Notes under the pieces: generated by a model
What the model saw: only the letters and a program-made list of their open reading frames with translations
What the model was told of the DNA's origin: nothing
Database searches by the model: none
Translations under genes and position numbers: made by a program
NCBI RefSeq assembly: GCF_035084215.1
Contig: NC_090335.1
Coordinates: forward strand, 54,126,001 to 54,190,000
DNA from: Heptranchias perlo
Taxonomy: Eukaryota
Direction of reading: 5' to 3'
Length of the DNA: 64,000 nucleotides
Shown here: positions 2,376 to 59,597 of the stretch, piece by piece
Position numbering within the stretch: the first letter of the stretch is position 1
How the letters are laid out: every line of letters starts with the position of its first letter

Positions 2376-2973
2376 AGGCAATGACAATCTCCAAAAAGAG
2401 AGTGTCTAACCACCTCCCCTTGACATTCAACGGCATTACCATCACCGAATCCCCCGCCATCAACATCCTGGGGGTCACCATTGACCAGAAACTTAACTGG
2501 ACCAGCCACATAAATACTGTGGCTACAAGAGCAGGTCAGAGGCTGGGTATTCTGCGGCAAGTGAGTCACCTCCTGACTCCCCAAAGCCTTTCCACCATCT
2601 ACAAGGCACAAGTCAGGAGTGTGATGGAATACTCTCCACTTGCCTGGATGAGTGCAGCTCCAACAACACTCAAGAAGCTCGACACCATCCAGGACAAAGC
2701 AGCTCGCTTGATTGGCACCCCATCCACCACCCTAAACATTCACTCCCTTCACCTCCGGCGCACTGTGGCTTCAGTGTGTACCATCCACAGGATGCACTGC
2801 AGCAACTCGCCAAGGCTTCTTTGACAGCACCTCCCAAACCCGCGATCTCTACCACCTAGAAGGACAAGAGCAGCAGGCACATGGGAACAACACCACCTGC
2901 ACGTTCCCCTCCAAGTCACACACCATCCTGACTTGGAAAGATATCGCCTTTCCTTCATCGTCACTGGATCAAA
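2376..2973 (+). mobile_element. CR1-Zenon-like LINE fragment (RT C-terminus)
   Basis: ORF 2348-2824 LGVTIDQKLNWTSHI...YKAQVRSVMEYSPLAW is nearly identical to 39268-39850. Confidence 0.9.
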
Positions 2974-7257: not shown

Positions 7258-10210
7258 GAAGAGTGAGGTACAAAACATGACCGGACAGATGGTCTGAGAA
7301 AGCAGGGCAAAGACCAAGGGAAGTCTAGATTAAACTGCATTTCAATGCAAGAAGTCTGATGGGCAAGGCAGATGAACTCGGGGCATGGATGGGCACATGG
7401 GACTGGGATGTTATAGCTATTACTGAAACATGGCTAAGGGAGGGGCAGGACTGGCAGCTCAATGTTCCAGGGTACAGATGCTATAGGAAAGATAGAGCAG
7501 GAGGTAAGAGAGGAGGGGGAGTTGCGTTCTTGGTTAGGGAGAACATCACAGCAGTAGTGAGAGAGGATATATCCGAGGGTTCGCCCAAGGAGTCTATATG
7601 GGTAGAACTGAAAAATAAGAAGGGAGAGATCACGTTGATAGGATTGTACTACAGACCCCCAAATAGTCAACAGGAAATTGAGGAGCAAATATGTAAGGAG
7701 ATTACAGACAGCTGCAAGAAAAATAGGGTGGTAATAGTAGGGGACTTTAACTTTCCCAACATTGACTGGGACAGCCATAGCATTAGGGGCTTGGATGGAG
7801 AGAAATTTGTTGAGTGTATTCAGGAGGAATTTCTCATTCAGTATGTGGATGGCCCGACTAGAGAGGGGGCAAAACTTGACCTCCTCTTGGGAAATAAGGA
7901 AGGGCAGGTGACAGAAGTGTTAGTGAGGGATCACTTTGGGACCAGTGATCATAATTCCATTAGTTTTAGGATAGCTATGGAGAATGATAGGTCTGGCCCA
8001 GAAGTTAAAATTCTAAATTGGGGAAAGGCCAATTTTGATGGTATTAGACAGGAACTTTCAGAAGTTGATTGGGAGAGTCTGTTGGCAGGCAAAGGGACGT
8101 CTGGTAAGTGGGAGGCCTTCAAAAGTGTGTTAACCAGGGTTCAGGGTAAGCACATTCCTTATAAAGTGAAGGGCAAGGCTGGTAGAAGTAGGGAACCTTG
8201 GATGACTCTGGAGATTGAGGCCCTAGTCAGAAAGAAGAAGGAGGCATATGACATGCATAGGCAGCTGGGATCAAGTGGATCCCTTGAAGAGTATAGAGAT
8301 TGCCGGAGTAGAGTTAAGAGAGAAATCAGGAGGGCAAAAAGGGGATATGAGATTGCTTTGGCAGATCAGGCAAAGGTGAATCCAAAGAGCTTCTACAAAT
8401 ACATAAAGGGCAAAAGAGTAACTAGGGAGAGAGTAGGGCCACTTAAGGATCAACAAGGTCATCTATGTGCAGAACCACTAGAGATGGGTGAGATCCTAAA
8501 TGACTATTTCGTATCGGTATTTACGGTTGAGAAAGGCATGGATGTTAGGGAACTTGGGGAAATAAATAGTGATGTCTTGAGGAGTGTACATATTACCGAG
8601 AGGGAGGTGCTGGAAGTCTTAACGCGCATCAAGGTAGATAAATCTCCAGGACCTGATGAAATGTATCCCAGGACATTATGGGAGGTTAGGGAGGAAATTG
8701 CGGGTCCCCTAGCAGAGATATTTCAATCATCGACAGCTACAGGTGAGGTGCCTGAAGATTGGAGGGTAGCAAATGTTGTGCCTTTGTTTAAGAAGGGCGG
8801 CAGGGAAAAGCCTGGGAACTACAGACCGGTGAGCCTGACATCTGTAGTGGGTAAGTTGTTAGAGGGTATTCTGAGAGACAGGATCTACGGGCATTTGGAG
8901 AGGCAGGGACTGATTAGGAACAGTCAGCATGGTTTTGTGAGAGGAAAATCATGTCTCACAAATTTGATTGAGTTTTTTGAAGGGGTAACCAAGAAGATAG
9001 ATGAGGGCTGTGCAGTAGACGTGGTCTACATGGACTTTAGCAAAGCCTTTGACAAGGTACCGCATGGTAGGTTGTTACATAAAGTTAAATCTCACGGGAT
9101 CCAAGGTGAGGTAGCCAATTGGATACAAAATTGGCTTGACGGCAGAAGACAGAGGGTGGTTGTAGAGGGTTGTTTTTCAAACTGGAGGCCTGTGACCAGC
9201 GGTGTGCCTCAGGGATCGGTGCTGGGTCCGCTGTTATTTGTTATTTATATTAATGATTTGGATGAGAATTTAGGAGGCATGGTTAGTAAGTTTGCAGATG
9301 ACACCAAGATTGGTGGCATTGTGGACAGTGAAGAAGGTTATCTAGGATTGCAACGGGATCTTGATAAATTGGGCCAGTGGGCCGATGAATGGCAGATGGA
9401 GTTTAATTTAGATAAATGTGAGGTGATGCATTTTGGTAGATCAAATCGGGCCAGGACCTACTCCGTTAATGGTAGGGCGTTGGGGAGAGTTATAGAACAA
9501 AGAGATCTAGGAGTACAGGTTCATAGCTCCTTGAAAGTGGAGTCACAGGTGGATAGGGTGGTGAAGAAGGCATTCAGCATGCTTGGTTTCATTGGTCAGA
9601 ACATTGAATATTGGAGTTGGGATGTCTTGTTGAAGTTGTACAAGACATTAGTTCGGCCACACTTGGAATACTGTGTACAGTTCTGGTCACCCTATTATAG
9701 AAAGGATATTATTAAACTAGAAAGAGTGCAGAAATGATTTACTAGGATGCTACCGGGACTTGATGGTTTGACTTCAAGGGAGAGGTTGGATAGGCTGAGA
9801 CTTTTTTCCCTGGAGAGTAGGAGGTTTCGGGGTGATCTTATAGAAGTCTATAAAATAATGAGGGGCATAGATAAGGTAGATAGTCAAAATCTTTTCCCAA
9901 AGGTAGGGGAGTCTATAACGAGGGAGCATAGATTTAATGTGAGAGGGGAGAGATACAAAAGGGTCCAGAGGGGCAATTTTTTCACTCAAAGGGTGGTGAG
10001 TGTCTGGAACGAGCTGCCAGAGGCAGTAGTAGAGGCGGGTACAATTTTGTCTTTTAAAAAGCATTTGGACAGTTACATGGGTAAGATGGGTATAGAGGGA
10101 TATGGGCCAAGTGCAGGCAATTGGGACTAGCTTAGTGGTATAAACTGGGCGACATGGACATGTTGGGCCGAAGGGCCTGTTTCCATGTTGTAAACTTCTA
10201 TGATTCTATA
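7258..10210 (+). mobile_element. CR1 LINE, 5'-truncated, near-intact ORF2 (APE endonuclease + RT)
   Basis: ORF 7359-9737 ([32 protein letters not shown]) continues in frame after one TGA into 9747-10130; ends in TTCTATGATTCTAT repeat. Confidence 0.97.
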
Positions 10211-10386: not shown

Positions 10387-12710
10387 ATAAGAACATAAGA
10401 AATAGGAGCAGGAGTAGGCTATTTGGCCCCTTGAGCCTACTCCGCCATTCAATCAGATCATGGCTGATCTTCCACCTCAATTCCACTTTTCCGCCTGATC
10501 CCAATATCCCTTGATTTCCCCTAGAGTCCAAACATTTATCTATCTTAGCCTTGAACATATTCAGCGACTGAGCTTCCACAGCCCTCTGGGGTAGAGAATT
10601 CCAAAGATTCACAACCCTCTGAGTAAAGAAATTCCTCCTCATCTCTGTCTTAAATGGCCAACCCCTTATCCTGAGACTATGCCCCCTGGTTCTAGACTCT
10701 CCAGCCAGGGGAAACAACCTCTCAGCATCTACCCTGTTAAGCCCCCTGAGATCACCTCTCACTCATCTAAACTCCAGAGAGTATAGGCCCATTCTACTTG
10801 ATCTCTCCTCATAGGACGACCCTCTCATCCCAGAAATCAATCTAGTGACCCTTTGTTGCACCATCTCTAAGGCAAGTATATCCTTCCTTAGATAAGGAGA
10901 CCAAAACTGTACGTAGTACTCCAGGTGTGGTCTCACTAAAGCCCTGTACAGTTGTAGTAAGACTTCCTCACTCTTGTACTCCAACCCCCTTGTAACAAAG
11001 GCCAACATGCCATTTGCCTTCCTAATTGCTTGCTTGTACCTGCATGCTAACTTTTTGTGTTTCTTGTACGAGGACACCCAAATCTCTCTGGACACCAACA
11101 TGTAATAATTTCTCACCATTTAAATAATATTCTGTTTTTCTATTCATCCTATCAAAGTGAATAACCTCACATTGCCCCACATTATACTCCATCTGCCACT
11201 TTCGTGCCCACTCACCTGACCTGTCTATGTCCCTTTGCATATTCTTTGTGCCCTCCTCACAGCTTACTTTCCCACCTAGCTTTGTATCATCAGCAAACTT
11301 GGATACATTACACTCGGTCCCTTCATCTAAGTCATTAATATTGATTATAAATGTAAGGAATCTTACAACACCAGGTTATAGTCCAGGTTACAACACCAGG
11401 TTATTGGACTATAACCTGGTGTTGTAAGATTCCTTACATTTGTCCACCCCAGTCCATCACCGGCATCTCCACATCTTGATTATAAACAGCTGAGGCCCAA
11501 GCACTGATCCTTGCGGCACTCCACTAGTTATAGCCTGCCAAGCAGGAAATGACCCGTTTATCCCCACTCTGTTTTCTGTCCGTTAACTAATCCTGTATCC
11601 ATACTAATATATTACCCCCAACCCCATGAGCCTTTATCTTGCGTAACAACCTTTTAAGGGCACCTTATCGAATGCCTTTTGAAAATCCCCTTTATCGACC
11701 CTGCTAGCTACTTCCTCACAAAACTCTAATAGAATTGTCAAACACGATTTCCCTTTCATAAAACCATGTTGACTCTGCCTAATCATATTATGATTTTCTA
11801 AGTGCCGTTACCACTTACTTAATAATGAATTCCAGCATTTTCCTGGTGACTGATGTCAGGCTAACTGGCCTGTAGTTCCCTGTTTTCTCTCTCCTTCCTT
11901 TCTTGAATAGCGGGGTTACATTTGCTACCTACTAATTCGCTGGGACCATTCCAGAATCTAGGGAATTTTGGAAGATCAGAACCAATGCATTCACTATCTC
12001 TGCAGCCACCTCTTTTAGAACCCTAGGATGTAGGCCATCAGGTCCAGGAAATTTATCAGATTTTAGTTCCATTAGTTTCTCCAATACTTTTTCTCTACTG
12101 ATATTAATTACTTTAAGTTGCTCACTCATATTAGCCCCTTAGTTCCCCACTATTTCTGGTATGCTTTTTGTGTCTTCTACTGTGAAGACAGATGCAAAAT
12201 ATTTGTTCAACGACTCTGCCATTTCCTTATTCTCCATTATGATTTCTCCTGTCTCAGCCCCTAAGGGACCAACATTTACTTTTACTACTCTCTTCCTTTT
12301 TACATTCTTGTAGAAGCCCTTCAACTTGTTTTCATATTTCTTGCTAGTTTACTATCATTTTCTATTTTCTTCCTTTTCATCAATTTCTTGGTCATCATTT
12401 GCTGGTTTCCAAAACTCTCCCAATCCTCAGGCTTACTACTCTTCTTCGCAACATTATAGGCCTCTTCTTTTAATCTAATACTTTCCTTAACTTCTTTAGC
12501 CACAGATGAATCACTTTTCCCATGGAGTTTATATTTCTCAATGGAATGTATATTTGTTGAGAATTTTGAAATATTTCTTTAAATGTTGCCATTGCTTATC
12601 TACTGTCTGACATTTTAATCTAATTTCCCTAATCTACCTTAGCCAACTCGCCCCTCATACCTATGTAATTGGCTTTATTTAAGTTTAAGACTCTATTTTC
12701 AGACTTAAGT
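10387..12710 (-). mobile_element. CR1 LINE, fragmented ORF2
   Basis: Several short - ORFs with RT and C-terminal motifs (LVRPHLEY, NFFTQRVV, PGPDGLHPRVLKE); (TATGTTCT)n tail. Confidence 0.93.
11352..11475 (+). mobile_element. Penelope-like fold-back mini-element, copy 1
   Basis: ~37-bp inverted arms (AAATGTAAGGAATCTTACAACACCAGGTTATAGTCCA), tail GTCCACCCCAGTCCATCACCGGCATCTCCACATC, 11-bp TSD TTGATTATAAA (11341-11351 / 11476-11486); inserted in CR1. Confidence 0.85.
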
Positions 12711-26875: not shown

Positions 26876-26888
26876 AGGTTATAAGAAT

Positions 26889-27315
26889 GGCACCTCATCT
26901 ACCACCCTAAACATTCACTCCCTTTACCACCAGCACACAGTGGCTGCAGTGTGTACCATCCACAGGATGCACTGCAGCAACTCGCCAAGGCTTTTTCGAC
27001 AGCACCTCCCAAACCCACGACCTCTACCACCTAGAAGGACAAGGGTAGCAGACACATGGGAACAACGCCACCTGGCACGCTCCCCTCCAAGTCACACACC
27101 ATCCCAATTTGGAAATATATCGCCATTCCTTCATCGTCGCTGGGTTAAAATCCTGGAACTCCCTACCTAACAGCATTGTGGGAGAACCTTCACCACACAG
27201 ACTGCAGCAGTTCAAGAAGGGGGCTCACCACCACCTTCTCAAGGGCAATTAGGGATGGGCAATAAATGCCGGCCTTGCCAGCGACACCCACATCCCATGA
27301 ACAAATAAAAAAAAA
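26889..27315 (+). mobile_element. CR1-Zenon-like LINE 3' fragment with A tail
   Basis: Matches 39597-40021, including GGGCAATTAGGGATGGGCAATAAATG...A tail. Confidence 0.9.
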
Positions 27316-27451
27316 TGGCAGCTGTAAGAAATTAAATTTTTTACCTGGGACACTTTCACATTACAGTACACAGATGCTTTAGTTCAAGCAAAGGTTAAAG
27401 TGTAGTAATTTTAATTTTAATTTGTAACCACACAAATTATGGTCAGCTTAC

Positions 27452-32961: not shown

Positions 32962-33142
32962 ATTATTGCCCCATATATCAGCACAGCTTTGGCCAGATCC
33001 TGAATTTCTGCATTCGTCTTCAAAGTGTATGAATGATATGCAATGATGTAGGATGTTTGCGACCTAGTCAGTGCTGAGCTAAGCCTTGACTCCCGATAAA
33101 GTTTTATATCAGCAATAATTGTCCTCTTAGAGGATAATACCT

Positions 33143-33296
33143 GATGTGGAGATGCCGGTGATGGACTGGGGTTGACAATTGTAAACAATTTTACAACACC
33201 AAGTTATAGTCCAGCAATTTTATTTAAAATTCACAAGCTTGTGAATTTAAAATGAAATTGCTGTACTATAACTTGGTGTTGTAAAATTGTTTACAA
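33143..33296 (-). mobile_element. Penelope-like fold-back mini-element, copy 2 (hairpin tip collapsed at AAGCTT)
   Basis: Reverse-oriented tail GATGTGGAGATGCCGGTGATGGACTGGGGTTGAC; near-perfect palindrome centred on AAGCTT (33235-33240); TSD AGGATAATACCT(G) at 33131-33143 / 33297-33309. Confidence 0.88.
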
Positions 33297-36060: not shown

Positions 36061-36467
36061 TATTGTTGCAGGACCACTGAAAGCATGACATACTGAGGGC
36101 AATTTTCACATTCACCACTTAGGCAGTAAATTGGCCGAGTGGATTGTCCGTCTGTTATGGAACCCACATGACTTTCATTTCCACTGATGTGAGCGCAACA
36201 GAAATCAGGTTTGTCCGATTTGAGCATACAAACGTGATCAAACCTGATCATAAGATACCCCCTCAAAAGTCAGTTTTTAAAAAAAATGGAAGTCTGTGTT
36301 TTTCCCCATTTTCTTCTGTGCCTTATGGTATGGAGACATTCGTAATTAAGATTTAGTAAACCAAACATCAGAGCTGAACTCGACCTGATCCTGTCTTGTC
36401 CCTTGGTAAAATGTGGCAACCCTATTTGTGACTTTGTTAAAGAATGTGAGAGTAGTTATCAGATCAC

Positions 36468-36560
36468 GGGTATGGTAGCATAGTGGTTATGTTACTGGGC
36501 TAGTAATCCAGAGGCCTGGACTAAAATCCAGAGTCATGAGTTCAAATCCCGCCACGGCAG
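36468..36560 (+). promoter_or_regulatory. tRNA-Thr(AGU)-like head with Pol III A box and B box
   Basis: A box TAGCATAGTGG (36476-36486); D stem GCAT/ATGT; anticodon arm CTGGG-CTAGTAA-TCCAG (36495-36511); duplicated arm CTGGA-CTAAAA-TCCAG (36516-36531); B box GAGTTCAAATCC (36538-36549). Confidence 0.8.
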
Positions 36561-39094
36561 CTGGCGAATTTAAATTCAATTAATTAATTAAATTCAATTA
36601 ATTAAAATAAAATCTGGAATTAAAATACTAGTATCAGTAATGATAGCCATGAAACTACCGGATTGTCGTAAAAACCCATCTGGTTCACTAATGCCCTTTA
36701 GGGAAGGAAGCCTGCCGCCCTTACCCGGTCTGGCCTATATGTGACTCCAGACCCACAGCAATGTGGTTGATTCTTAATTGCCCTCTGAAATGGCCTAGCA
36801 AGCCACTCAGTTGTAAAATCTCGCTACGAAAAGTCATAATAAGAATAAAACCACCCGGCATCGGACCACTAGGCACCGGACACGACAACGGCAAAACACC
36901 AAGCCCAGTCGACCCTGCAAGGTCCTCCTTACTAACATCTGGGGACTTGTGCCAATATTGGGAGAGCTGTCACACAGACTAGTCATGCAACAGCCTGACA
37001 TAGCCATACTCACAGAATCATATCTTTCAGCCAACGTCCCAACGTCCCAGACTCTTCCATCACCATCCCTGGGTATGTCCTGTCCCACCGGCAGGACAGA
37101 CCCACCAGAGGTGGCGGTACAGTGATATACAGTCAGGAGGGAGTGGCCCTGGGAGTCCTCAACATTGACTCTGGACCCCATGAAATCTCATGGCATCAGG
37201 TCAAACATGGGCAAGGAAACCTCCTGCTGATTACCACCTACCGTCCTCCCTCAGCTGATGAATCAGTCCTCCTCCATGTTGAACACCACTTGGAGGAAGC
37301 ACTGAGGGTAGCAAGGGCACAAAATGTACTCTGGGTGGGGGACTTCAATGTCCATCACCAAGAGTGGCTCGGTAGCACCACTACTGACCGAGCTGGCCGA
37401 GTCCTGAAGGACATAGCTGCTAGACTGGGCCTGCGGCAGGTGGTGAGCGAACCAACACGAGGGAAAAACTTACTTGACCTCGTCCTCACCAATCTACCTG
37501 TCGCAAATGCATCTGTCCATGACAGTATTGGTAGGAGTGACCACCGCACAGTCCTCGTGGAGATGAAATCCCGTCTTCGCACTGAGGACACCATCCAACG
37601 TGTTGTGTGGCACTACCACCGTGCTAAATGGGATAGATTCAGAACAGATCTAGCAGCTCAAAACTGGGCATCCATGAGGCGCTGTGGGCCATCAGCAGCA
37701 GCAGAATTGTATTCCAGCACAATCTGTAACCTCATGGCCCGGCATATTCCTCACTCTACCATTACCAACCCTGGTTCAACGAGGAGTGTAGAAGAGCATG
37801 CCAGGAGCAGCACCAGGCGTACCGAAAAATGAGGTGCCAACCTGGTGAAGCTACAACTCAGGACTACATGCATGCTAAACAGTGGAAGCAACATGCTATA
37901 GACAGAGTTAAGCGATTCCACAACCAACGGATCAGATCAAAGCTCTGCAGTCCTGCCACATCCAGTCGTGAATGGTGGTGGACAATTAAACAACTAACGG
38001 GAGGAGGAGGCTCTGCAAACATCCCCATTCTCAATGATGGCGGAGTCCAGCACGTGAGTGCAAAAGACAAGGCTGAAGCGTTTGCAACCATCTTCAGCCA
38101 GAAGTGCCGAGTGGATAATCCATCTCAGCCTCCTCCCGATATCCCCACCATCACGGAAGCCAGTCTTCGGCCAATTCGATTCACTCCACGTGATATCAAG
38201 AAACGGCTGAGTGCACTGGATACAGCAAAGGCTATGGGCCCCGACAACATCCCAGCTGTAGTGCTGAAGACTTGTGCTCCAGAACTAGCTGCGCCTCTAG
38301 CCAAGCTGTTCCAGCACAGCTACAACACTGGCATCCACCCGACAATGTGGAAAATTGCCCAGGTATGTCCTGTCCACAAAAAGCAGGACAAATCCAATCC
38401 GGCCAATTACCGCCCCATCAGTCTATTCTCAATCATCAGCAAAGTGATGGAAGGTGTCGTCGACAGTGCTATCAAGCGGCACTTACTCACCAATAACCTG
38501 CTCACCAATGCTCAGTTTGGGTTCCGCCAGGACCACTCGGCTCCAGACCTCATTACAGCCTTGGTCCAAACATGGACAAAAGAGCTGAATTCCATAGGTG
38601 AGGTGAGAGTGACTGCCCTTGACATCAAGGCAGCATTTGACCGAGTGTGGCACCAAGGAGCCCTAGTAAAATTGAAGTCAATGGGAATCAGGGGGAAAAC
38701 TCTCCAGTGGCTGGAGTCATACCTAGCACAAAGGAAGATGGTCGTGGTTGTTGGAGGCCAATCATCTCCGCCCCAGGGCATTGCTGCAGGAGTTCCTCAG
38801 GGCAGTGTCCTAGGCCCAACCATCTTCAGCTGCTTCATCAATGACCTTCCCTCCATCATAAGGTCAGAAATGGGGATGTTCGCTGATGACTGCACAGTGT
38901 TCAGTTCCATTCGCAACCCCTCAGATAATGAAGCAGTCCGAGCCTGCATGCAGCAAGACCTGGACAACATCCAGGCTTGGGCTCATAAGTGGCAAGTAAC
39001 ATTCGCGCCAGATAAGTGCCAGGCAATGAACATCTCCAACAATTGTAAACAATTTTACAACACCAAGTTATAGTCCAGCAATTTTATTTTAAAT

Positions 39095-39131
39095 TCACAA
39101 GCTTTCGGAGGCTTCCTCCTTCGTCAGGTGA
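39095..39131 (-). ncRNA. Minimal type I hammerhead ribozyme motif (mirror copy)
   Basis: Exact reverse complement of 39144-39180. Confidence 0.75.
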
Positions 39132-39143
39132 ACGATGTGAAAA

Positions 39144-39180
39144 TCACCTGACGAAGGAGGAAGCCTCCGAAAGCTTGTGA
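39144..39180 (+). ncRNA. Minimal type I hammerhead ribozyme motif
   Basis: UCAC-CUGACGA-A-GGAGG-AAG-CCUCC-GAA-AGCU-U-GUGA: stem I UCAC/GUGA, CUGANGA and GAAA core, stem II GGAGG/CCUCC, palindromic AGCU stem III. Confidence 0.75.
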
Positions 39181-40027
39181 ATTTAAAATAAAATTGCTGG
39201 ACTATAACTTGGTGTTGTAAAATTGTTTACAATTGTCAACCCCAGTCCATCACCGGCATCTCCACATCATCTCCAACAAGAGAGAGTCTAACCACCTCCC
39301 CTTGACATTCAACGGCAGTACCATCGCCGAATCCCCCACCATCAACATCCTGGGGGTCACCATTGACCAGAAACTTAACTGGACCAGCCATATAAATACT
39401 GTGGCTACGAGAGCAGGTCAGAGGCTGGGTATTCTGCGGCGAGTGACTCACCTCCTGACTCCCCAAAACCTTTCCACCATCTACAAGGCACAAGTCAGGA
39501 GTGTGATGGAATACTCTCCACTTGCCTGGATGAGTGCAGCTCCAACAACACTCAAGAAGCTCGACACCATCCAAGATAAAGCAGCCCGCTTGATTGGCAC
39601 CCCATCCACCACCCTAAACATTCACTCCCTTCACCACCGGCGCACTGTGGCTGCAGTGTGTACCATCCACAGGATGCACTGCAGCAACTCGCCAAGGCTT
39701 CTTCGACAGCACCTCCCAAACCCGCGACCTCTACCACCTAGAAGGACAAGGGCAGCAGGCGCATGGGAACAACACCACCTGCACGTTCCCCTCCAAGTCA
39801 CACACCATCCCGACTTGGAAATATATCGCCGTTCCTTCATTGTCGCTGGGTCAAAATCCTGGAACTCCCTTCCTAACAGCACTGTGGGAGAACTGTCACC
39901 ACACGGACTGCAGCGGTTCAAGAAGGCGGCTCACCACCACCTTCTCGAGGGCAATTAGGGATGGGCAATAAATGCTGGCCTTGCCAGCGACGCCCACATC
40001 CCGTGAACGATTAAAAAAAAATACATG

Positions 40028-40726
40028 GGGCCAGAATTTACTGTAAGTGGCGAATGAACGATGCCAGCCATTCGTTAGACTTGCACTTGCCCAAACAATT
40101 TCTATGGCGTTTTGCTCTGCAAGTTGCTGTCAACGGGACAGCCAAATTGTGCGACGCCCTCTACAGGGCATCTGTGATCTGTGTGAACAGGGAAAGCAAC
40201 TGTGTATCTCCTTAACCAATCAGATTGAAGAATAGTTAATAACAGCAGAGTCTGAACCCGGATGTGGAATTTAGAATAGTGAATTCAATGTCAAATCAGG
40301 TACAGAAAGCGAAATAAAGAGACCCAAAGACAGATTGGATTAAGAGACAGAGATAAAAGAGATAGAAAGCTAGAAGAATAATTTATTTTAATTTTTTTTA
40401 AATCTCCAACAATAATTAAAAGCTGAAGGAATGAGACTCCACATTTGCAAAAGTAAATTTTCAGTGTCGGAGAGGTTGTTTGGCAGTAATTAAGACTTAC
40501 CGTACCGTTTAAAGGGTGCTTAGACTGGAATGGACAAGCCCTAACTTTTTGTGGTGAGTTTGGTCAGTATCTACCAACTAAGTATGAGAACTTCATGCCA
40601 TTCAACGTATTTGATTTCCGTGTTCAGCTGCGCATGTGCGCTCGCCTGAAGTTGCTGTCCGAATTGGGAATGAATAACAGTGATCGCTGTTAGTCTCACC
40701 GTTATCTTCACAGTAAATTCTGGGCC
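40028..40726. mobile_element. PIF/Harbinger-type non-autonomous element
   Basis: TIRs GGGCCAGAATTTACTGT / ACAGTAAATTCTGGGCC, 3-bp TSD ATG; same family as 60943-62199. Confidence 0.8.
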
Positions 40727-44949: not shown

Positions 44950-46900
44950 CTTTTGATTGAGTTCTTTGATGAGGTAATGGAGAAGGTTGATGAGGGTAAT
45001 TTTTTTTTATTCGTTCATGGGATGTGGGCATTGCTGGCAAAGCCAGCATTATTGCCCATCCCTAATTGCCCCTGAGAAGGTGGTGATGAGCCGCCTTCTT
45101 CAACCGCTGCAGTCAGTGTGGTGAAGGTTCTCCCACAGTGCTGTTAGGTAGGGAGTTCCAGGATTTTGACCCAGCGACGATGAAGGAACTGCGATATATT
45201 TCCAAGTCGGGATGGTGTGTGACTTGGAGGGGAACATGCAGGTGGTGTTGTTCCCATGCTGCCCTTGTCCTTCTAGGTGGTAGAGGTCGCGGGTTTGGGA
45301 GGTGCTGTCGAAGAAGCCTTGGTGAGTTGCTGCAGTGCATCCTGTGGATGGTACACACTGCAGCCACGGTGAAGGGAGTGAATGTTTAGGGTGGTGGATG
45401 GGGTGCCAATCAAGCGGGCTGCTTTGTCCTGGATGGTGTCGAGCTTCTTGAGTGTTGTTGGAGCTGCACTCATCCAGGCAAGTGGAGAATATCCCATCAC
45501 ACTCCTGACTTGTGCCTTGTAGATAGCGGAAAGGCTTTGGGGAGTCAGGAGGTGAGTCACTCGCCGCAGAATACCCAGCCTCTGACCTGCTCTTGTAGTC
45601 ACAGTATTTATGTGGCCAGTCCAGTTAAGTTTCTGGTCAATGATGACCACCAGGATGTTGATGGTGGGGGATTCGGCGATGGTAATGCCGTTGAATGTCA
45701 AGGGGAGGTGGTTAGACTCTCTCTTGTTGGAGATTGTCATTGCCTGGCACCTGTCTGGCAATGCAGTTGATGTTGTGTAGATGGACTTTCAAAAGGCATT
45801 GGATAAAGTACCACATAACAGACTTGTTAGCAAAATTGAAGCCCGATTAAAGGGGCAGTGGCTGCATGGATACGTAATTGGCTAAGGGACAGAAAGCAGA
45901 GAGTAGTGGTGAACGGTTGTTTTTCAGACTGGAGGGAAGTGAGCAGTGGTGTTCTCCAGGGGTCAGTGTTGGGACCACTGCTCTTTTTGATATAAATTAA
46001 TAACTTGGACTTGGGTGTACAGGGCATAATTTCAAAGTTTGCAGATGACACAAAACTCAGAAATGTAGTAAACAGTGAGGAGGATAGTAACAGACTTCGC
46101 GAGGACATAGACAGACTGTTGAAATGAAAGACAAATGGCAGTTTAAATTTAACGCAGAGAAGCATGAAGTGATTAATTTTGGTAGGTAGAATGAAGAGAG
46201 GCAATATAAACTTAAATAGTACAATTTTAAAGTGAGTGCAGGAACAGAGAGACCTCACGTGTATGTATACAAATCTCTGAAGGTGGCAGGCCAAGTTGAG
46301 AAGGCTGTTAAAAAGGCATACGGCATCCTTGGCTTTATAAATCTTGGCATAGAGTACAAAAGCAAGAAAGTTATGCTAAACTTTTATAAAACACTGGTTA
46401 GGCTCCAGCTGGAGTATTGAGTCCAATTCTGAGCACCATTCTTTAGGAAGGATGTCAAGACATCAGAGAGGGTGCAGAGGAGATATACTAGAATGGTACC
46501 AGAGATGAAAGACTTCAGTTACATGGAAAGACTAGAGAAATTGGGGTTGTTCTCCTTAGAGCAGAGAAGGAGAAGGGGAGATTTGATAGAAGTGTTCAAA
46601 TCATGAAGGGTTTTGATAGAGTAAATAAGGAGAAACTGTTTCCAGTGGCAGAAGGGTCAGTAACCAGAGGACACAGATTTAAGGTAATTGGCAAAGGAAC
46701 CAGAGGCAACATGGGGAAAAAAAATTACACAGCAAATCGTTATGACCTGGGAACTGGATAAATACTTGAAGGGGTGAAATTTGTAGGCCTATGTGGAAAT
46801 AGCAGGGGAGTGGGTCTAATGGGATAGCTCTTTCAAAGAGCCGGCACAGGCATGATGGGCTGAATGGCCTCCTTCTGTCCTGTATCATTCTATGATTCTA
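44950..46900 (+). mobile_element. Degenerate CR1 3' half interrupted by a Zenon-like fragment
   Basis: TTGATTGAGTTCTTTGATGAGGTA...GAGGGTAAT resumes as AATGCAGTTGATGTTGTG after the insertion; ATTCTATGATTCTAT tail. Confidence 0.85.
45001..45757 (-). mobile_element. CR1-Zenon-like LINE 3' fragment
   Basis: ORFs 45273-45761 and 45113-45367; poly-T on + is the A tail. Confidence 0.92.
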
Positions 46901-53537: not shown

Positions 53538-55807
53538 TCTCCAATTAGGACCTTTTGTTTTTAGGATTGTGGTTCCAGGGATCGGCAGCAGGTTTTCTGG
53601 CTGCTGTTGCAGCTGCGGTCGATGTTCCTGCCCCAGTTCATGGCATGAGGCCCTGCCAGGGTGTGGGCTGTGCTGTGTCTGTTCACCGCCTGGGCAACGG
53701 GTGTCCAGAAATATTGGGCCTATTGGGGCCGTTTCCTACCCCCCCCCCCAACCACTGCACAGATGCAACATGCCCGAGGTGCGCTGTGACTGTCGAGGCC
53801 AAGCTGTACCTGAGTTTGGCATACCAGGCCATTAGCATGGCATGGTCATACCCTAGTGCAGGCTTGCCATATGGCAGGACTTTGCACTGGGAAACAGGGG
53901 CAGAAAGAAGACTGCAGCTGCAGTCCTGATGACTGTCCTTGGGACCTCTTGCCTGCCAGAAGGGCATCCGAGCCTGAAAAAGAAATCACCATACTGTTGA
54001 TGAAAAAGAGTTTCCCACCTACTTCTGGACCTCTTCCCCCTGCTGCCGAGCCCCCCAATGCCCTCTGATCTGAGGGGGATCCTGGCACAACCCATAGTCA
54101 GTTTCGTGTTGAGCCCTTGTGTCTGGGCACCCCTGTGCCGCAACCACAGGAAATGGAGGCATAAGGCCTCCACCCCATCCCACCTCATTTACATCAGTGC
54201 GCTGTGTCTGCACCCATTGCTAGTGCAGGACCTGCTGCTCCCCTTAGAGGAAGGGTTGGAAACCCTACGTAAAGGGGGCAGAGAGTTTTAAAAGTCTCCA
54301 CCCCTTTTTTCCTGACCTTTGTCACCAGGGAGTAGGCGTTCCCTGGGACCAAGGTCAGGAAAATGTCCACCTGTATTTACAAGTTAAGGTTGAAGTGTCC
54401 CAAATCTCTGAGGCATAGAGCCTCTCAAAGTGTAAGGCTGAATCTGCCTAACCACTCACTGCCAAGGTAAGCCTACTCAACAGTATCATTAGCAGGTTTA
54501 CAAGTTTCTATTTTTTATCATCTGACTTCCTGCTGGTTCACGTATCCTTTCCTTTATCTCAGTTATTTACCATTTCTTGCATACTGCTGCAGACAAATTA
54601 AAATAATGGACTTACTGCCTGAAAAATGAAATGTCTATGATGGAAAAAACTAGCAGAAAATCTATCTAGCCCACAGAATCATAGGATAGTGACATTTCAG
54701 CCATTGGTTTTGAACACGGTAATTTAAAAAGAATGAGGTCACTGAAAGGTAAGTGGCTACAAATGTGGGGCGGAATTTTTTCTTAAAAGCTTTTATAAGC
54801 CTATTAATTACCCAAACATTGGCAAAGCATTGATAAAGCCTGCACATGGAAAAACTAATGATAGACAAAATATATATGAAGGTTAGCAATGGTGTCTCTT
54901 GACAAGTGAGGGAACAGCGCAGTACCCAACCAACTACTTGATAGAAAGGTCAATGAGCTGTTACATGAAGTGGGTATCAGCAGTGTTGTCCTTTTTGGCA
55001 CTTAATGGAAATCTCTCCAGAGGACAGGCATGTAGTATGCCTAGCAAATTCAGTCTCAGTACATAAGACACAGGAACATATGCAGAAGAGGGCGGTGCAC
55101 CTTAAGAAAGCAGCCCAACAGTATATGGTCAGGATACACATGCCATAAAATGTTGCTAGGCACCTTGCTGTAGAATTATCTCTGGCCCATACTAAACCCT
55201 TACATAACTTTACAGTTCATGCATACCCTTAATTGTAAATTGAAAGCCTCGGCACACTCACAACTTCAAAGTGCTTCACATGTAAAAGCACTGTAACACA
55301 GTCCAGCTGCATGCCTGGTCACTTAATGACCCTGAGCATGGGCTGCAGCTGATGTACATGTCTGTCACTAAATGTGTTCCTTTAACTTACAACATAAAAA
55401 AATTACTTCTCTGCTTACATGACAAGATGGCACCTGATACAGGGAACAGATCCAAACTAGAGAAGTCAGGAATTATAAGTCTTTGTCTCCCTTTGAAAAC
55501 ACCACCCTGGGCAACTATGATCATAAAAGCATTAAAATTCTAAGAGACAGTGAAGTGGTAGTCCTCCCCCAAACTAAGAGCTAGTACCTTCAAATTTTAA
55601 TGATTTGCCCCCTCTTACTCGCTCCCACACTGGCATAAACATAACCACACTTGCACAGTTAGAATCCTGTACTCCGAGCTTTGTTTGGCAGCGTCTCTTA
55701 AAGAGACAATTGCAACTTTTGTCACTTTTGTCATTGCAGGCCTGGAACAGCACCTGCCAGCACTGCCAGGACAAGATGGTGGATGGTGGTGGACATTTAA
55801 ACAAATC

Positions 55808-57524
55808 ATGTGCTGGGCTCCGTCATTGTTGAGGATGGAGATGTTCATGGAACCTGCTCCTCCTTTTAGTTGCTTAATTGTCCACCACCACTCATGACAA
55901 TTAAACAACTAATGGGAGATGGAGACTCCTTGAACATCCCCATCCCCATTGATGTCGGAGCCCAGCACGTGAATGCAAAAGATAAGGCTGAAGCGTTTGC
56001 AACCAATTTCAGCCAGATGTGTTGAGTGGAAGATTCTTCTGGACCTCCTCCTGAAGTCCCCACCATCACAGATGCCAGTCTTCAGCCAATTTGATTCACT
56101 CCACGTGACATCAAGAAACAGCCTTTGCTGTGTCCAGTGCACTGACCTGTGCTCCGACGCTAGCCGCGCCCCTAGCTAAGCTTTTCCAGTACAGCTACAA
56201 CACTGGCATCTACCCGAAAATATGGAAAAATGCACAGGTATGTCCTGTCCACAATAAGCAGGACAAATGCAACCTAGACAATTACTGCCCCATCAGCCTA
56301 CTCCCAGTCATCAGAAAAGTGATGGAAGGGGTCATCAACAGAGGTATTAAGTGACCAATAACATTCTCGCCAGTGTTCATCTTCAGTTCCACTAGGGCCA
56401 CTCGGGTCCAGACCTCATTACAACCTTGATCCAAATATGGACACAAGAGCTGAATTCCAGAGGTGAGGTGAGAGTGACCACCCTTGACATCAAGACAGTA
56501 TTTGAGCAAGTGTGGCACCAAAAGAGCCCTAGTAAAACTGAAGTCAATGGTGATCAGGGGGAATACTCCCCAGTGACTGAAATCATACTTGGCATAACAG
56601 AGGATGGTTGTGGTTGTTGGAGGCCAATCATCTCAGCTAAGGACTGTAGGAGTTCCTCAGGGCAGCGTCCTAGGCCCAAACATCTTCAGCTGCTCCATCA
56701 TAGGGTCAGAAGTGGGACTGTTCACTGATGATTGCACAGTGTTCAGCTCTACTTGCAATTCTGCAGATGATGAAGCAGATCATACCCATATGCAGCAAGA
56801 CCTGGATAACATGCAGACTTAGTCTGATTAGTGGCAAATAACATTTTTGTCACACAAGAGCGAGGCAACTACCATCTCCAGCACCCTTGAAGGCTGCCTG
56901 AATGCCATGGCTACTAGAGCAGGTCAGAAGCTGGGTATTCTGCGTCGAGTGGCTCACCTCCTCACCACCCTCTCCCCCCCGCCAAAGCCTCTCCATCACC
57001 CACAAGGCACAAGTCAGGAATGTGATGGAACACTCTCCACTTACCTGGATGGGTTCAGCTGCAACAACACTCAAGAAGCTCAACACCATCAGGACAAAGT
57101 AGTCCGCTTGATCGGAAACCTATCCACAAGCTTAAACATCCACACCATCCACTACTGGTGTACCATGGCTGCAGTTTGTACTATCTACAGGATTCACTGC
57201 AGCAAGTCACCAAGGCTTCTTTGGCTGCACCTCCCAAACCACCACCACTTAGAAGGACAAGGGGCATGGAAAGACTATCACATAAAAGTTCACCTCCAAG
57301 TCACACACCATCCTGACTTGGACATATATCGTCGTTCCTTCATTGTCGCTGGGTAAAAGTCCTGGAACTCCTTACCTAACAGCACTGTAGAAGTACCTTC
57401 ACCACATGGACTGCAGTGATTCAAGAAGATGGCCCAACACCACCTTCTTAAGGGCAACTAGGGATCGAAAATAAATACTGGCTTTGCCAGCAAAGCTTAC
57501 ATCTCGAAGAATGAATTAAAAAAA
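55808..57524 (+). mobile_element. Old CR1-Zenon-like LINE copy with fold-back inverted 5' end
   Basis: Decayed RT ORFs 56130-57356; A tail ~57519; 55808-55882 is an imperfect reverse complement of 55896-55972. Confidence 0.85.
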
Positions 57525-57977
57525 GATGGGATCTCACAGCACCCTGCAGCCCTCTCAGCAACTTTTTCTAGCTCTAATCTCCAAGTCACACTTTAAAGGG
57601 GAAACATCGGCATAAAAAATAAAATGATAAGTGTCGAGCAGTTAAATAGAGCTGTCATTAAATTTAACGTCATTTTTCTCTTTGCAGTGTTGAAATAAAT
57701 TCATAACTTATACATGTTCGAAAAATTATTTTCTTGTCAAGAGAATGTTGAGTGTGCGATTAATTATTATATGCAGTTTGCTGGGTACATATGAGATTAC
57801 AGGACTATCTGGTTCTTCACAGCACATGACCTGATAAAGTGACTTGTGTATCATTTTACCAGGCTTGCAAATGACGTGAGTGGTGATGTCATTGTCATTG
57901 ATTGATTCTGCCGCTAAAAAATGAAATTACTGAAGGTTTATTTCACAAACTTCAAGATAAATCATTGACAAGACTAT

Positions 57978-58092: not shown

Positions 58093-58384
58093 TATTTGTC
58101 AATTTTAGGGGTTCAAGCGCATCTAAAAGGACACTTTATTGGACAGGTACAGTTTGTGGATTATAGAGAATAGGCTCTGCTTCAGGGTTCTGCTGTGAAA
58201 CCATTGGAACAGAAAGGTGTACTTTAAAAAACCCAGAACTGTAATGAAGCATCAATATACTGAAGGACAGAACTTCCGATTGGTGACACTCATGCATGAG
58301 CCATAAAACATTCATACTAAACAGGTTAATGCCTGCATAAAAATAGTGCAGTGCAGAAATGATTGCCCATATTGCTCATTCGGG

Positions 58385-58445
58385 TTGGGCAATAAATGCT
58401 GGCCTTGCCAGCGACGCCCACAGCCCATGAACGAATAAAAAAAAA
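58385..58445 (+). mobile_element. Zenon-like LINE extreme 3' end
   Basis: TGGGCAATAAATGCTGGCCTTGCCAGCGACGCCCAC...A tail. Confidence 0.8.
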
Positions 58446-59597
58446 TCTAATACATGGCTGTTAAGCATTCATATATGAAAAATGCTGATTGAATATTCTA
58501 CCCTCTTTTGTCTTCATACAGTAAAAGAGCTTCTTGGTATCCTTATGGATAAGGCTGTGCCTGGCATAATGTGAGATTTGATTGAATAAATTTATGCTGA
58601 TTCGTATTTAAGAAATGCCACAGGATGTGGAAAGCTGAACATTCTTTGTGCAATCATTCTCAGGAAATCAGCAATAACAGGAAATGTCAATATCATTAAG
58701 TAACAGTAATCTAATTGTTTAATGGAGTGCAAAGCCTATAGACATAGAGGTGAATGAAATGATATAAACTGAAGTAGTGTTTGTTATAACTGATTTAAAG
58801 GCAATCAGTACACACCTATCTATGAGGGGTGTGGTGAAGTGTTAAAGCAAAAGAGAAGCAAACCATGGAGGCAATGAATGTGTTCACGTTTTGTTTAATG
58901 TGATCTTTAATGTGAAACATTTTTAATATAGTCCAGTCCTGTACATTGAAATGTAAAAAGCACCAGACAGTGAGCTTTGATTTTTTATTGGACCCTAAAT
59001 GTATTTCCTGTGACCACATGTTCAACAATTAGATAATAAAAAGCACACATAATGAACTCTAAGTTTACTCTTATTGAAGTCTCCTTGATTTCACTTTGTT
59101 GCATTTCTAATTTAATGTCTTAAGCAGCCAACTTACTTTAACTTCTTAAAGGGACACGGCTTTCATTAAAAAGTGTTTAGCAAATCATTACTTCACTTCC
59201 ACATCTTGTAATGGTGAAAATGATGCATGGTTCTGAGTTTTCTTTCTCCCCAATAATAACAATCATTTATCAAACACTTATCCTGAACATGCTGCCCCTT
59301 TAAGTACTAAATGCTAGATGCAACTTTTAAAATTTGCATTTCTCAATATAGTTTTTTTGAAAATATTTTATTGTAAATAGCTTGTAAATGTTATAAAGTT
59401 TAACCACTGAAACAGTGCGCTTTTCCTTTCGTGAATGCATTTTTACATAATAGTGAAAGAGGAGATAATATTGAATATTGTCATAGAACTTGAATGTTAA
59501 CAGGGAAGTATATGGTAATAAGAGGATTGATTAATATCTGGAATTTAAAACCAATATTTTCAATCATACCTAGGCTCTCCAATCATTTAACAAGTTT

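Follow-up and report, generated by a model that had tools for sequence, protein, structure and literature searches.

[quoted passage not shown] The copy is dead and represents a LINE that is abundant in elasmobranchs; it combines, in this order, a tRNA-like head in which A and B boxes are exact, a 365-nt leader, a reading frame for endonuclease and reverse transcriptase (EN-RT ORF), a tail and a run of nine A.

Structure of the headed LINE

Normally only small parasitic SINEs bear a tRNA-like promoter of this sort. The features of the element are as follows:

36468-36559, + strand: tRNA-derived head, Thr-AGT-like and degenerate, starting at the first base of the repeated unit (ARAGORN, Rfam, contig depth step)
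36476-36486, + strand: A box, exact match to the consensus that we take to be TRGCNNAGTGG
36540-36549, + strand: B box, exact match to the core that we take to be GTTCRANNCC
36560-36812, + strand: leader common to the LINE and its partner SINE (contig joints 36812/36815 to 39948/39951 in all four runs; composition)
36813-36924, + strand: LINE-only leader, A-rich; EN frame open from 36817, no ATG in the present copy
36925-37829, + strand: endonuclease part of the one ORF, apurinic type (Pfam PF14529/PF03372)
37829-39042, + strand: reverse transcriptase region (Pfam RVT_1, 5.1e-36; shark relatives of 66-88% identity)
39043-39267, no strand assigned: palindromic (hairpin) later insertion, private to the present copy and foreign to the LINE (other copies have a joint from 39030 to 39268)
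39268-39958, + strand: C-terminal part of the ORF, stop codon 39956-39958 (matches partial copies)
39948-40012, + strand: 3' tail common to the SINE and to 5'-truncated copies; AATAAA at 39967, ATTAAA at 40010
40013-40021, + strand: poly(A) tail, A9; first T4 downstream at 40110

Pfam places Exo_endo_phos_2 (PF14529, 1.1e-14) within 37122-37829 and RVT_1 (PF00078, 5.1e-36) within 37829-39040, and finds no domain either in the 101 aa that precede them or in the C-terminal portion of the ORF. Since the gap between head and EN is only 365 nt long and holds no Pfam match, there is no ORF1, as the preliminary description of this locus had claimed in proposing a single EN-RT ORF; its phrase "fused directly" is loose with respect to the 365-nt gap. 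Two breaks disrupt the reading frame, a tandem duplication of 8 bp (37031-37046) and a short deletion at 37769, and loose contig ends at 37039 and 37769 coincide with them; the 225-bp insertion is a further interruption. At the 3' end, A-rich loose contig ends beyond 40002/40007 in four of four runs agree with the poly(A) tail. No common word of at least 6 bp, as expected of a target-site duplication, links the 40 nt upstream with the approximately 50 nt past A9; elements of the CR1 group often lack such duplications. CpG content ranges from 0.36 to 0.53 throughout head, body and flanks alike, and so tells nothing about the relative ages of head and body.

The head is the single tRNA-like gene that ARAGORN reports in the window (Thr(AGT), 36469-36559), and it is degenerate: against the Rfam tRNA model it scores 18.7 bits, below the gathering score of 29, and no part of the window attains gathering. 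Its fold is not superior to that of shuffled sequences (z 0.20), and a role in RNase P/Z-type processing was rejected for the head of the present copy on this ground. With the A-box and B-box motifs that we take to be the consensus, the A box TAGCATAGTGG is one of three matches in the window (0.97 expected) and the B box GTTCAAATCC is one of five (3.65 expected); 36476 and 36540 form the only same-strand pair in the window at tRNA-like spacing (53 nt), and the 5' end of the element lies 8 nt upstream of the A box. The remaining A-box matches, at 10128 in a CR1-type tail and at 36132 in plain flank, were dismissed as chance. The tRNA-Thr-like head with both boxes, first recognized from the letters alone, is confirmed in degenerate form.

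Head and LINE as one retrotransposed unit

Besides the main copy, the window contains five fragments of the family, four of which reach the tail (44999-45734, 26885-27316, 55896-57527 and 58378-58446); none of the five reaches the 5' region, and the window offers no second example of a headed copy, as would suit an unrelated SINE fragment that happens to lie beside a 5'-truncated LINE. Against such an accident, no SINE tail or poly(A) separates head and ORF, and no SINE remainder follows downstream of 40021; a SINE without its 3' end cannot arrive through target-primed reverse transcription. Because of these two absences, head and LINE must have been inserted as one unit, and the missing remainder past 40021 also rules out insertion of a LINE into a SINE. 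Loose contig ends at 36815 likewise continue into LINE-type leader (18 contigs in run X6, 579 in run X11). Chance adjacency, which the preliminary description had itself named as its refuter, is borne out neither by the anatomy nor by loose contig ends and depth; it is close to refuted and retains hardly any probability.

Contig depth leads to the same junction. In four runs from three organisms, depth increases by a factor of over 1000 precisely at 36468; in run X1, the 134-nt bin ending at 36467 has a depth of 3.4e3 and the next bin 3.3e6, and from the leader into EN the depth continues unbroken at 1.6e6 to 5e6. The head is part of the retrotransposed unit and no chance neighbor, as anatomy, the depth step and its unbroken continuation into the ORF demonstrate.

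The partner SINE and the spread of the head

Joints connecting 36812/36815 to 39948/39951 occur in contigs of all four runs; the joint from 36812 to 39948 was found in 15, 1, 53 and 58 contigs of X1, X6, X11 and X13, and neighboring joint variants are likewise listed for all four. They describe a SINE that equals the first ~345 nt of the LINE plus its last ~74 nt. Since this SINE consists of the head, the leader of ~250 nt and the final ~74 nt of the LINE, LINE and SINE are two size classes of one element, the SINE being the internal-deletion form. The tail is not the property of the SINE only, as 5'-truncated LINE copies have it too, and loose ends at 36815 show other copies going on into A-rich sequence similar to the LINE-only leader. 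Within the shared leader, the AT-rich stretch 36562-36640 contains A4 runs and no T4.

Contig depth suggests that the head may be family-wide; the present copy is the one headed copy that was read. For 36468-37400, half or more of the sampled words were present in 12 of the 24 runs listed, from six coded organisms. For organism A, the depth of the head bin (3.3e6) equals that of the LINE 5' bins (1.6e6 to 3.6e6); in organisms D and E the head bin is 7-9 times shallower (8.6e4 vs. 5.7e5; 6.2e4 vs. 4.5e5). As a caveat, contig depth is a crude measure; contigs reveal neither transcript starts nor strand, and the term "RNA-like" for run X6, represented by contigs only, is a guess.

The shallow head bins in D and E would suit a reading in which headed copies are dead-on-arrival chimeras of a headless master LINE, and in which the SINE is a bipartite LINE with an added head, as in Kojima's model; reverse transcription of headless LINE RNA would jump to SINE RNA within the shared ~250-nt leader and end on the tRNA head. 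Template switching and chimeras of LINEs with small RNAs are known (10.1101/2025.02.02.635956, in part), and Kojima's model accounts for a SINE body derived from a LINE 5' UTR (excerpt of PMC5786205). Yet the equal depth in organism A, crude as the measure is, leaves little room for a headless majority, and indels in the head and in the AT-rich stretch clip contigs and lower the depth there; a chimeric origin appears rather improbable.

Sequence searches supply few further copies. No relative was found with the EN piece among metagenome contigs or with the RT piece among viral contigs; genome contigs yielded only two distant relatives (36-37% identity) on bacterial MAG contigs, which served as T-run controls. 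Across metagenome contigs the head pattern had one match, L003, prokaryote-like and attributed to chance. Protein searches returned only exonised fragments, located in annotated proteins of Heptranchias perlo and Heterodontus francisci and in EukProt entries; all of them lack the N-terminus and give no DNA. Besides the six coded organisms, the family is thereby seen in Heptranchias and Heterodontus. No full-length relative above 50% identity emerged from the representative search.

Shortage of T runs in the coding strand

All three runs of at least four T (T4+) in 36468-40021 lie inside the insertion (39053, 39082, 39087). Without insertion and A tail, the remaining 3320 nt contain 0 T4, 7 TTT and 21 A4+ runs, in agreement with the preliminary counts of none, about seven and about 20; 11 T4+ runs in the CR1 stretch 7359-10130 (at least 10 had been claimed) and 0 T4 in the partial copies 2387-2973 and 44999-45734 (- strand) also match what had been reported by eye. 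A third partial copy, 26885-27316, missing from the earlier list, has one T5, and an older related family has two T4+ runs.

The significance of the zero depends on the null model. In sets of 2000, mononucleotide shuffles gave a mean of 4.58 T4 (P(0) 0.0135), dinucleotide shuffles 2.35 (P(0) 0.07) and a second-order Markov model 0.45 (P(0) 0.64); synonymous shuffles with the element's own codon use gave 2.0 expected T4 (P(0) 0.087), and 9.8% of codon permutations contained zero T4. Given its own codon use, the absence of T4 is only weakly unusual. If the codon preferences of two other LINEs are imposed on the same protein, 7.7 or 6.2 T4 result, and none of 1000 recodings is T4-free; three of four other LINE ORFs contain 2.4-3.6 T4 per kb and the window background 7.6, compared to 0 in the element.

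Shorter runs are scarce too. There are 10 T|T codon junctions where 25.1 are expected (none of 3000 shuffles has so few) and 5 TTT where 15.0 are expected (none of 1000), approximately 60% under expectation, whereas AAA is as expected (50 vs. 50.6) and C|C junctions are in excess. The element thus has fewer T runs than would be predicted from its own amino-acid sequence and codon use. The shortage has no cut-off at four, as TT and TTT are scarce as well, and four degenerate sites with four T in five remain; human Pol III is halted by degenerate T-rich sites as well (excerpt of PMC3141230).

A weaker shortage is seen in two further LINEs of the window, in each on some measures only. In the control LINE at 7359, 33 T|T junctions compare with an expectation of 47.0 (P 0.001), and sites with at least four T in five number 18 vs. 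25.7 in LINE 7359, 10 vs. 14.9 in LINE 31470 and 3 vs. 6.8 in the headed LINE; the T-specific shortage in the headed LINE exceeds that of both controls. Of the idea that the coding sequence was selected against terminators, the terminator-free strand is confirmed, and the T-run shortage goes beyond codon-shuffled controls; the T4 count alone does not demonstrate such selection, and the trend recurs, weaker, in the two ordinary LINEs.

Which polymerase?

Pol III transcription of the headed LINE is tentatively regarded as plausible from its sequence: both boxes match exactly, and the element begins 8 nt ahead of the A box. The A and B boxes would be bound by TFIIIC and Pol III, and transcription would start at the element's first base; every new copy would therefore carry the promoter. 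For the SINE, the Pol III product would be a ~420-nt RNA; for the LINE, the T-run-poor sense strand might let a share of the polymerases travel 3.3 kb and produce a full-length retrotransposition template. Protein could come from uncapped full-length RNA, in the manner of R2; alternatively, other copies might supply it through less frequent Pol II transcripts. We know of no Pol III transcript of ~3.3-kb length; translation of a Pol III-made RNA was reportedly described by Gunnery and Mathews in 1995. One opposing feature is AATAAA 40 nt ahead of the A tail, which is compatible with Pol II 3' processing.

This polyadenylation signal would be accommodated if the LINE family had taken over the head of its SINE by 5' end switching, passed it on as a true part of the LINE, and had its coding RNA made by Pol II; a start at or before the first base would retain the head, and the T-poor strand would reflect codon and base make-up, with no terminator role. 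LINEs are as a rule Pol II transcripts, their protein must be translated, and 5' end switching in LINEs has been described (10.1101/2022.11.04.512097, in part); the T4 count is non-significant on the element's own composition, and the control LINEs display a similar, weaker avoidance of T runs. However, no Pol II promoter is evident, and the Pol II start would need to coincide with a tRNA-type +1 that is also the 5' end of the SINE; TTT at a third of expectation, with AAA as expected and C|C in excess, is a stronger bias than in both controls, and R2 is a LINE that lives on uncapped, non-Pol II RNA (excerpt of PMC3414825). Transcription by Pol II with an inherited head is considered somewhat less probable. 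The best explanation, put forward with reserve, would be that a SINE-type head of tRNA origin stood at the start of the LINE's template RNA and that Pol III was the likely polymerase. The fuller reading, a protein-coding, self-mobilising "autonomous SINE" with Pol III-made full-length RNA, an oligo-T-free coding strand and a SINE partner arisen by internal deletion, and as such a living intermediate in the birth of SINEs, is possible and somewhat more doubtful.

Relatives and comparable systems

The headed LINE belongs to the CR1 group and, judged by its features, probably to the "Zenon" type; absence of ORF1 and a poly(A) tail are CR1-Zenon features. With LINEs of the APE type it shares EN and RT in one sense ORF and 5'-truncated copies, and it departs from them in the missing target-site duplication. 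The 5' tRNA-derived head with boxes is that of SINE2 elements, which are short and non-coding, as the 3.3-kb element with its EN-RT ORF is not; the deletion partner, known as contig joints, is both. The layout is that of a Pol III type-2 unit, with A box (36476) and B box (36540) near the 5' end (36468) and 0 T4 in 3320 nt.

HE1/HER1 of sharks and rays are said to go back to Ogiwara et al. in 1999. HE1 with HER1 represents a tRNA-derived SINE with a LINE tail (excerpt of PMC3747384); SINE2 elements such as HE1 resemble the headed LINE in that A and B boxes lie in a tRNA-like head at the 5' end and that the 3' tail is common with a CR1-group LINE, and differ in that the headed LINE bears its head on a 3.3-kb protein-coding element. 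The deletion partner is a SINE of the SINE2 type, likened to HE1 by description only. Elasmobranch CR1-Zenon LINEs occur, like the headed LINE, in sharks and rays, and the invertebrate elements that are the nearest non-shark relatives of its RT (at most 50% identity) fit the scattered Zenon tree (PMC13343379, in part); the available main text of that study contains the terms "tRNA" and "polymerase III" zero times each, and describes no head.

Short partners formed from LINE 5' and 3' ends, like the SINE here, are RIME of ingi, NARTc of L1Tc and the Persaeus SIDE, the latter derived from a lepidopteran Zenon (excerpts of PMC5786205 and PMC6740152). Kojima's text, in the available part, differs in viewing bipartite LINEs as very likely Pol II transcripts, with the head added later to the short form. 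R2 resembles the headed LINE as a coding LINE whose RNA would be no capped Pol II product; it differs in that its own ribozyme excises the RNA from a Pol I rRNA co-transcript and in its site-specific insertion (excerpt of PMC3414825), whereas the headed LINE is dispersed and its Pol III-type promoter is internal. The T+ SINEs B2, Dip and Ves, with Pol III transcripts that undergo polyadenylation, combine AATAAA ahead of the A tail with a tRNA-type head, as does the headed LINE, but possess a T-run terminator between signal and tail (PMC8466645, in part); the headed LINE has none, its first T4 lying 89 nt past the tail.

Implications for SINE origins

In the literature searched, no tRNA-headed or Pol III-transcribed LINE has been described; the supplements of PMC13343379 may hold elasmobranch Zenon sequences with the head. 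Elements of the CR1 group make up 22-34% of the DNA in such genomes, according to the available part of the same study. In standing models of SINE birth, either a LINE tail or a bipartite LINE acquires its head from a small RNA, and the literature searched gives no coding intermediate. Such an intermediate would be a LINE family with headed full-length copies, beside a SINE equal to its two ends; the headed LINE is a candidate for this missing link in the origin of SINEs, and possibly a protein-coding element read by Pol III. If this is true, Pol III would make a multi-kilobase RNA as retrotransposition template, perhaps also as messenger, and would be the third polymerase in LINE biology, after Pol II and the Pol I of R2; its use would account for the scarcity of T runs in the coding strand. 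Were the element driven by Pol II, it would still be unusual, as a LINE that adopted the 5' end of a SINE.

Anatomy of the headed LINE

The headed LINE, a tRNA-like head with an endonuclease-reverse transcriptase (EN-RT) ORF at 36468-40021 (+), is one single retroelement copy, with the following parts behind its head.

Parts of the headed LINE downstream of the head
36562-36640, + strand: AT-rich stretch, 3' of the head
up to 36924, + strand: leader
+ strand: endonuclease region (PF14529, 1.1e-14)
+ strand: reverse transcriptase (PF00078, 5.1e-36)
39956-39958, + strand: stop codon of the C-terminal region
39967, + strand: AATAAA of the 3' tail
40013-40021, + strand: A9

The tRNA-Thr-like head with A and B boxes proposed in the preliminary description was recovered by motif matches and by ARAGORN, whose sole tRNA-like prediction across the window is Thr(AGT) at 36469-36559. 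Two intact motifs, TAGCATAGTGG (36476-36486) and GTTCAAATCC (36540-36549), which we take to be A and B boxes by their consensus, form the sole same-strand A/B pair with tRNA-like spacing in the window. The Thr(AGT)-like head is a relic rather than a gene; the Rfam tRNA model scores it at 18.7 bits vs. a gathering score of 29, an Rfam search of the entire window gave no match up to gathering score, and shuffled versions of the 95-nt head fold equally well (z 0.20). Since the gap between head and EN is just 365 nt, the element has no ORF1, as had been proposed. The copy in the window is dead; its reading frame changes twice, at an 8-bp tandem duplication (37031-37046) and at 37769, where a short stretch is deleted, and at both sites the contigs of other copies run on, seen as loose ends. 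No target-site duplication of at least 6 bp was found for this copy.

A 225-bp palindromic insertion at 39043-39267 is missing from other copies, where 39030 is joined to 39268. It is bordered by a direct repeat of about 12 bp of LINE sequence (39031-39042 and 39268-39279); two alignments to the copy at 44999-45759 overlap by 11 nt, which supports the repeat. Related arms occur at 33142-33296 and 11349-11475. Judged by this sequence, the insertion resembles a MITE-type element that duplicated its target.

The head as part of the copied RNA

Neither a SINE tail nor poly(A) lies between head and ORF, and no SINE remainder was found downstream of 40021. The head is not a separate SINE, because target-primed reverse transcription cannot insert a SINE that lacks its 3' end; a LINE inserted into a SINE would leave the SINE tail downstream, and with no remainder there, the copied RNA already ran from head to A tail. 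This anatomy, together with the contig depth and joints described below, stands against an adjacency of head and LINE by chance, which is highly improbable, and shows that a SINE-type head stood at the start of the template RNA.

Five further family fragments lie in the window, none of which extends into the 5' region.

Family fragments in the window
2387-2973: family fragment
44999-45734, - strand: family fragment
26885-27316: family fragment
58378-58446: family fragment
55896-57527: older relative, 77-80% identity

Counting an inverted copy of the start of its RT (93 bp, 55806-55898), the older relative spans 55806-57527. The 69-bp copy at 58378-58446 is an extreme 5' truncation consisting only of tail and A9 (92.8% identical), and shows that the final ~70 nt of the family are enough to be copied.

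In a run index queried with 36468-37400, this segment was wholly or partly present in 20 of the 24 runs listed (11 studies), and at least half of its sampled words occurred in 12 of the 24 (six coded organisms). Four of the 24 were aligned to 36200-40200 at 85% likeness: X1 (DNA) and X6 (possibly RNA) from the same sample of organism A, X11 from organism D, and X13 from organism E. Summed contig depth in X1 jumps from 3.4e3 in the 134-nt bin ending at 36467 to 3.3e6 in the next bin, stays at 1.6e6 to 5e6 across leader and EN, rises to 3.2e7 at the 3' end and drops again beyond the tail, the overall shape being the usual 5'-truncation profile.

Joints from 36812/36815 to 39948/39951 are present in all four runs; that from 36812 to 39948 occurs in 15 (X1), 1 (X6), 53 (X11) and 58 (X13) contigs. 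They describe a partner SINE in which about the first 345 nt of the LINE are joined to about its last 74 nt. At loose ends past 36815 (18 contigs in X6, 579 in X11), similar sequence follows that is A-rich and not tail; therefore, the shared leader continues into a LINE-type leader in many copies. Contigs of the repeat are short (about 200-500 nt), and among those listed none covers head and EN together. The headed copies could instead be dead-end chimeras, produced when reverse transcription changes template within the shared leader, from LINE RNA to SINE RNA, as in the SINE-birth model of Kojima, in which a head is joined to a bipartite LINE that is transcribed by Pol II and has been shortened beforehand (PMC5786205); we consider such an origin distinctly unlikely.

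We infer that full-length copies of the family normally carry the head. The depth of the head bin (36468-36601) cuts the other way, as counter-evidence to the head being a family-wide part: it is about equal to that of the LINE 5' bins in organism A, and 7-9 times shallower in D (8.6e4 vs. 5.7e5) and E (6.2e4 vs. 4.5e5), where depth is one figure per contig and indels in the head and AT-rich stretch clip contigs. Either the head is diverged or indel-bearing in D and E, or many copies have another head or none.

Within the leader shared with the SINE, an ATG at 36761 starts a 73-codon frame (36761-36982) that overlaps the EN start, one base out of the EN frame; the latter is open from 36817, without an ATG ahead of EN. 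At 36986 the window copy has a T that is part of an in-frame ATG; this ATG is private to the copy, because nearly all contigs (4 runs) read A.

Relationship to described elements

Among described families, the elasmobranch CR1-Zenon group comes closest; two of its three defining features occur in the headed LINE, the remaining one being placement in the RT tree. The main text of the elasmobranch CR1-Zenon paper contains no mention of tRNA or polymerase III (PMC13343379), and lepidopteran Zenon has an internally deleted partner, Persaeus, explicitly without a Pol III promoter (PMC6740152). No tRNA-headed or Pol III-transcribed LINE was found in the literature searched, a scope outside which subscription journals, repeat databases and supplements fall; relative to that literature, the combination of a SINE head on a LINE with a partner SINE composed of the two ends of that LINE is new.

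Two contigs filed as bacterial MAGs (Candidatus Thiodiazotropha, Sedimenticola), JBEVVR010000150.1 and JBEVXV010000821.1, encode LINE reverse transcriptases of eukaryote type that share 36-37% identity with the one in the headed LINE, and are probably misbinned host DNA. Pieces of its EN or RT (76-85% identical) are also contained in the annotated shark proteins P0151, P0154 and P0158; the carriers are an Ig-domain protein and a CWC25 homolog in Heterodontus francisci and an aldo-keto reductase in Heptranchias perlo, and reflect either exonisation or gene-model artefacts.

T runs and codon use

All three runs of at least four T (T4+) in 36468-40021 lie within the palindromic insertion; without insertion and tail, the remaining 3320 nt hold 0 T4, 7 TTT and 21 A4+ on the sense strand, so that the preliminary description (no T4 outside the insertion, about seven TTT, about 20 A4+) was exact. 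It was also right in counting at least 10 TTTT in the CR1 stretch 7359-10130 (11 T4+); its statement that younger partial copies lack T4 holds for the two that it lists. A third partial copy, 26885-27316, has a T5. The older relative has two T4+ runs in 1.6 kb. The window background is 7.6 T4 per kb on either strand, vs. 2.5, 3.6, 2.35 and 0 in four other LINE ORFs of the window, and 7.1 and 9.2 in two distant relatives on MAG contigs.

Zero T4 alone is unremarkable, because the element is T-poor (20%): T4 expectations are 4.58 in mononucleotide shuffles (P(0) 0.0135), 2.35 in dinucleotide shuffles (P(0) 0.07), 0.45 under a second-order Markov model (P(0) 0.64), 2.00 when synonymous codons are shuffled in the four ORF pieces (2802 nt; P(0) 0.087) and 2.04 under codon permutation (P(0) 0.098). 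The oddity is the make-up itself, as seen against two other LINEs of the window, LINE 7359 and LINE 31470; the former (7359-9737) is a different, T-richer LINE with an uninterrupted 792-codon EN-RT ORF and a CR1-type tail near 10100-10210.

Codon and dinucleotide use (headed LINE; LINE 7359; LINE 31470)
Phe TTT:TTC: 3:16; 20:7; 15:6
Two-fold pyrimidine codons, T:C: 49:104; 84:41; 56:24
TT observed/expected: 0.74; 1.17; 1.16

When the headed-LINE protein is recoded with the codon use of LINE 7359 or LINE 31470, 7.7 or 6.2 T4 result, and none of 1000 recodings has zero. Over and above codon use, codon order avoids T beside T: junctions with T on both sides number 10 vs. 25.1 ± 4.0 expected (as few in none of 3000 synonymous shuffles), and TTT 5 vs. 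15.0 ± 3.3 (0 of 1000). With AAA at expectation (50 vs. 50.6) and C-to-C junctions in excess (105 vs. 91.8), the shortage is T-specific, not pyrimidine- or homopolymer-wide. The controls' own T-run shortage tempers this result; in LINE 7359, T-to-T junctions are low too (33 vs. 47.0, P 0.001), as are A-to-A junctions (44 vs. 61.6), and sites with at least 4 T in 5 number 18 vs. 25.7 expected (LINE 7359), 10 vs. 14.9 (LINE 31470) and 3 vs. 6.8 (headed LINE, P 0.031). Observed/expected ratios are 0.33-0.44 in the headed LINE vs. 0.67-1.01 in the controls. Of the suggested selection of the coding strand against terminators, the part that stands is the position of TTT and T-to-T junctions clearly below codon-shuffled controls; the T4 count is about as make-up predicts, and the controls are low as well. 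Human Pol III also terminates partly at degenerate T-rich sites (PMC3141230); therefore, a 3.3-kb Pol III unit would be expected to lose T-rich words broadly, and the broad shortage found here is consistent with such a unit without proving it.

A possible polymerase III template

Three things are established: a template RNA with a SINE-type head, a partner SINE equal to the two ends of the LINE, and a coding strand poor in T runs. The self-mobilising, Pol III-read LINE of the preliminary description retains the head within the retrotransposed unit and the T-run shortage, and loses the T4 count, which fits make-up. The head's A and B boxes would recruit TFIIIC and Pol III, presumably with the element's first base as start; such a start would account for the exact 5' end that LINE and SINE have in common. 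On these sequence features, transcription of the full-length template by Pol III is a tentative reading, possible but short of probable. Somewhat less likely is the reading that the head is inherited and the RNA is made by Pol II following a switch of 5' end, with which the AATAAA 40 nt ahead of the tail is consistent.

For a Pol III-made template, the protein may be translated from Pol II transcripts that other copies produce more rarely, because a LINE that recognises the tail can act in trans on RNAs, as in work on stringent-type LINEs; or it may come from the uncapped Pol III RNA. A precedent for a LINE living on non-Pol II RNA is R2 (PMC3414825). Every new copy of the headed LINE would retain its promoter, because the boxes of the head lie inside a transcribed unit that would start at the first base.
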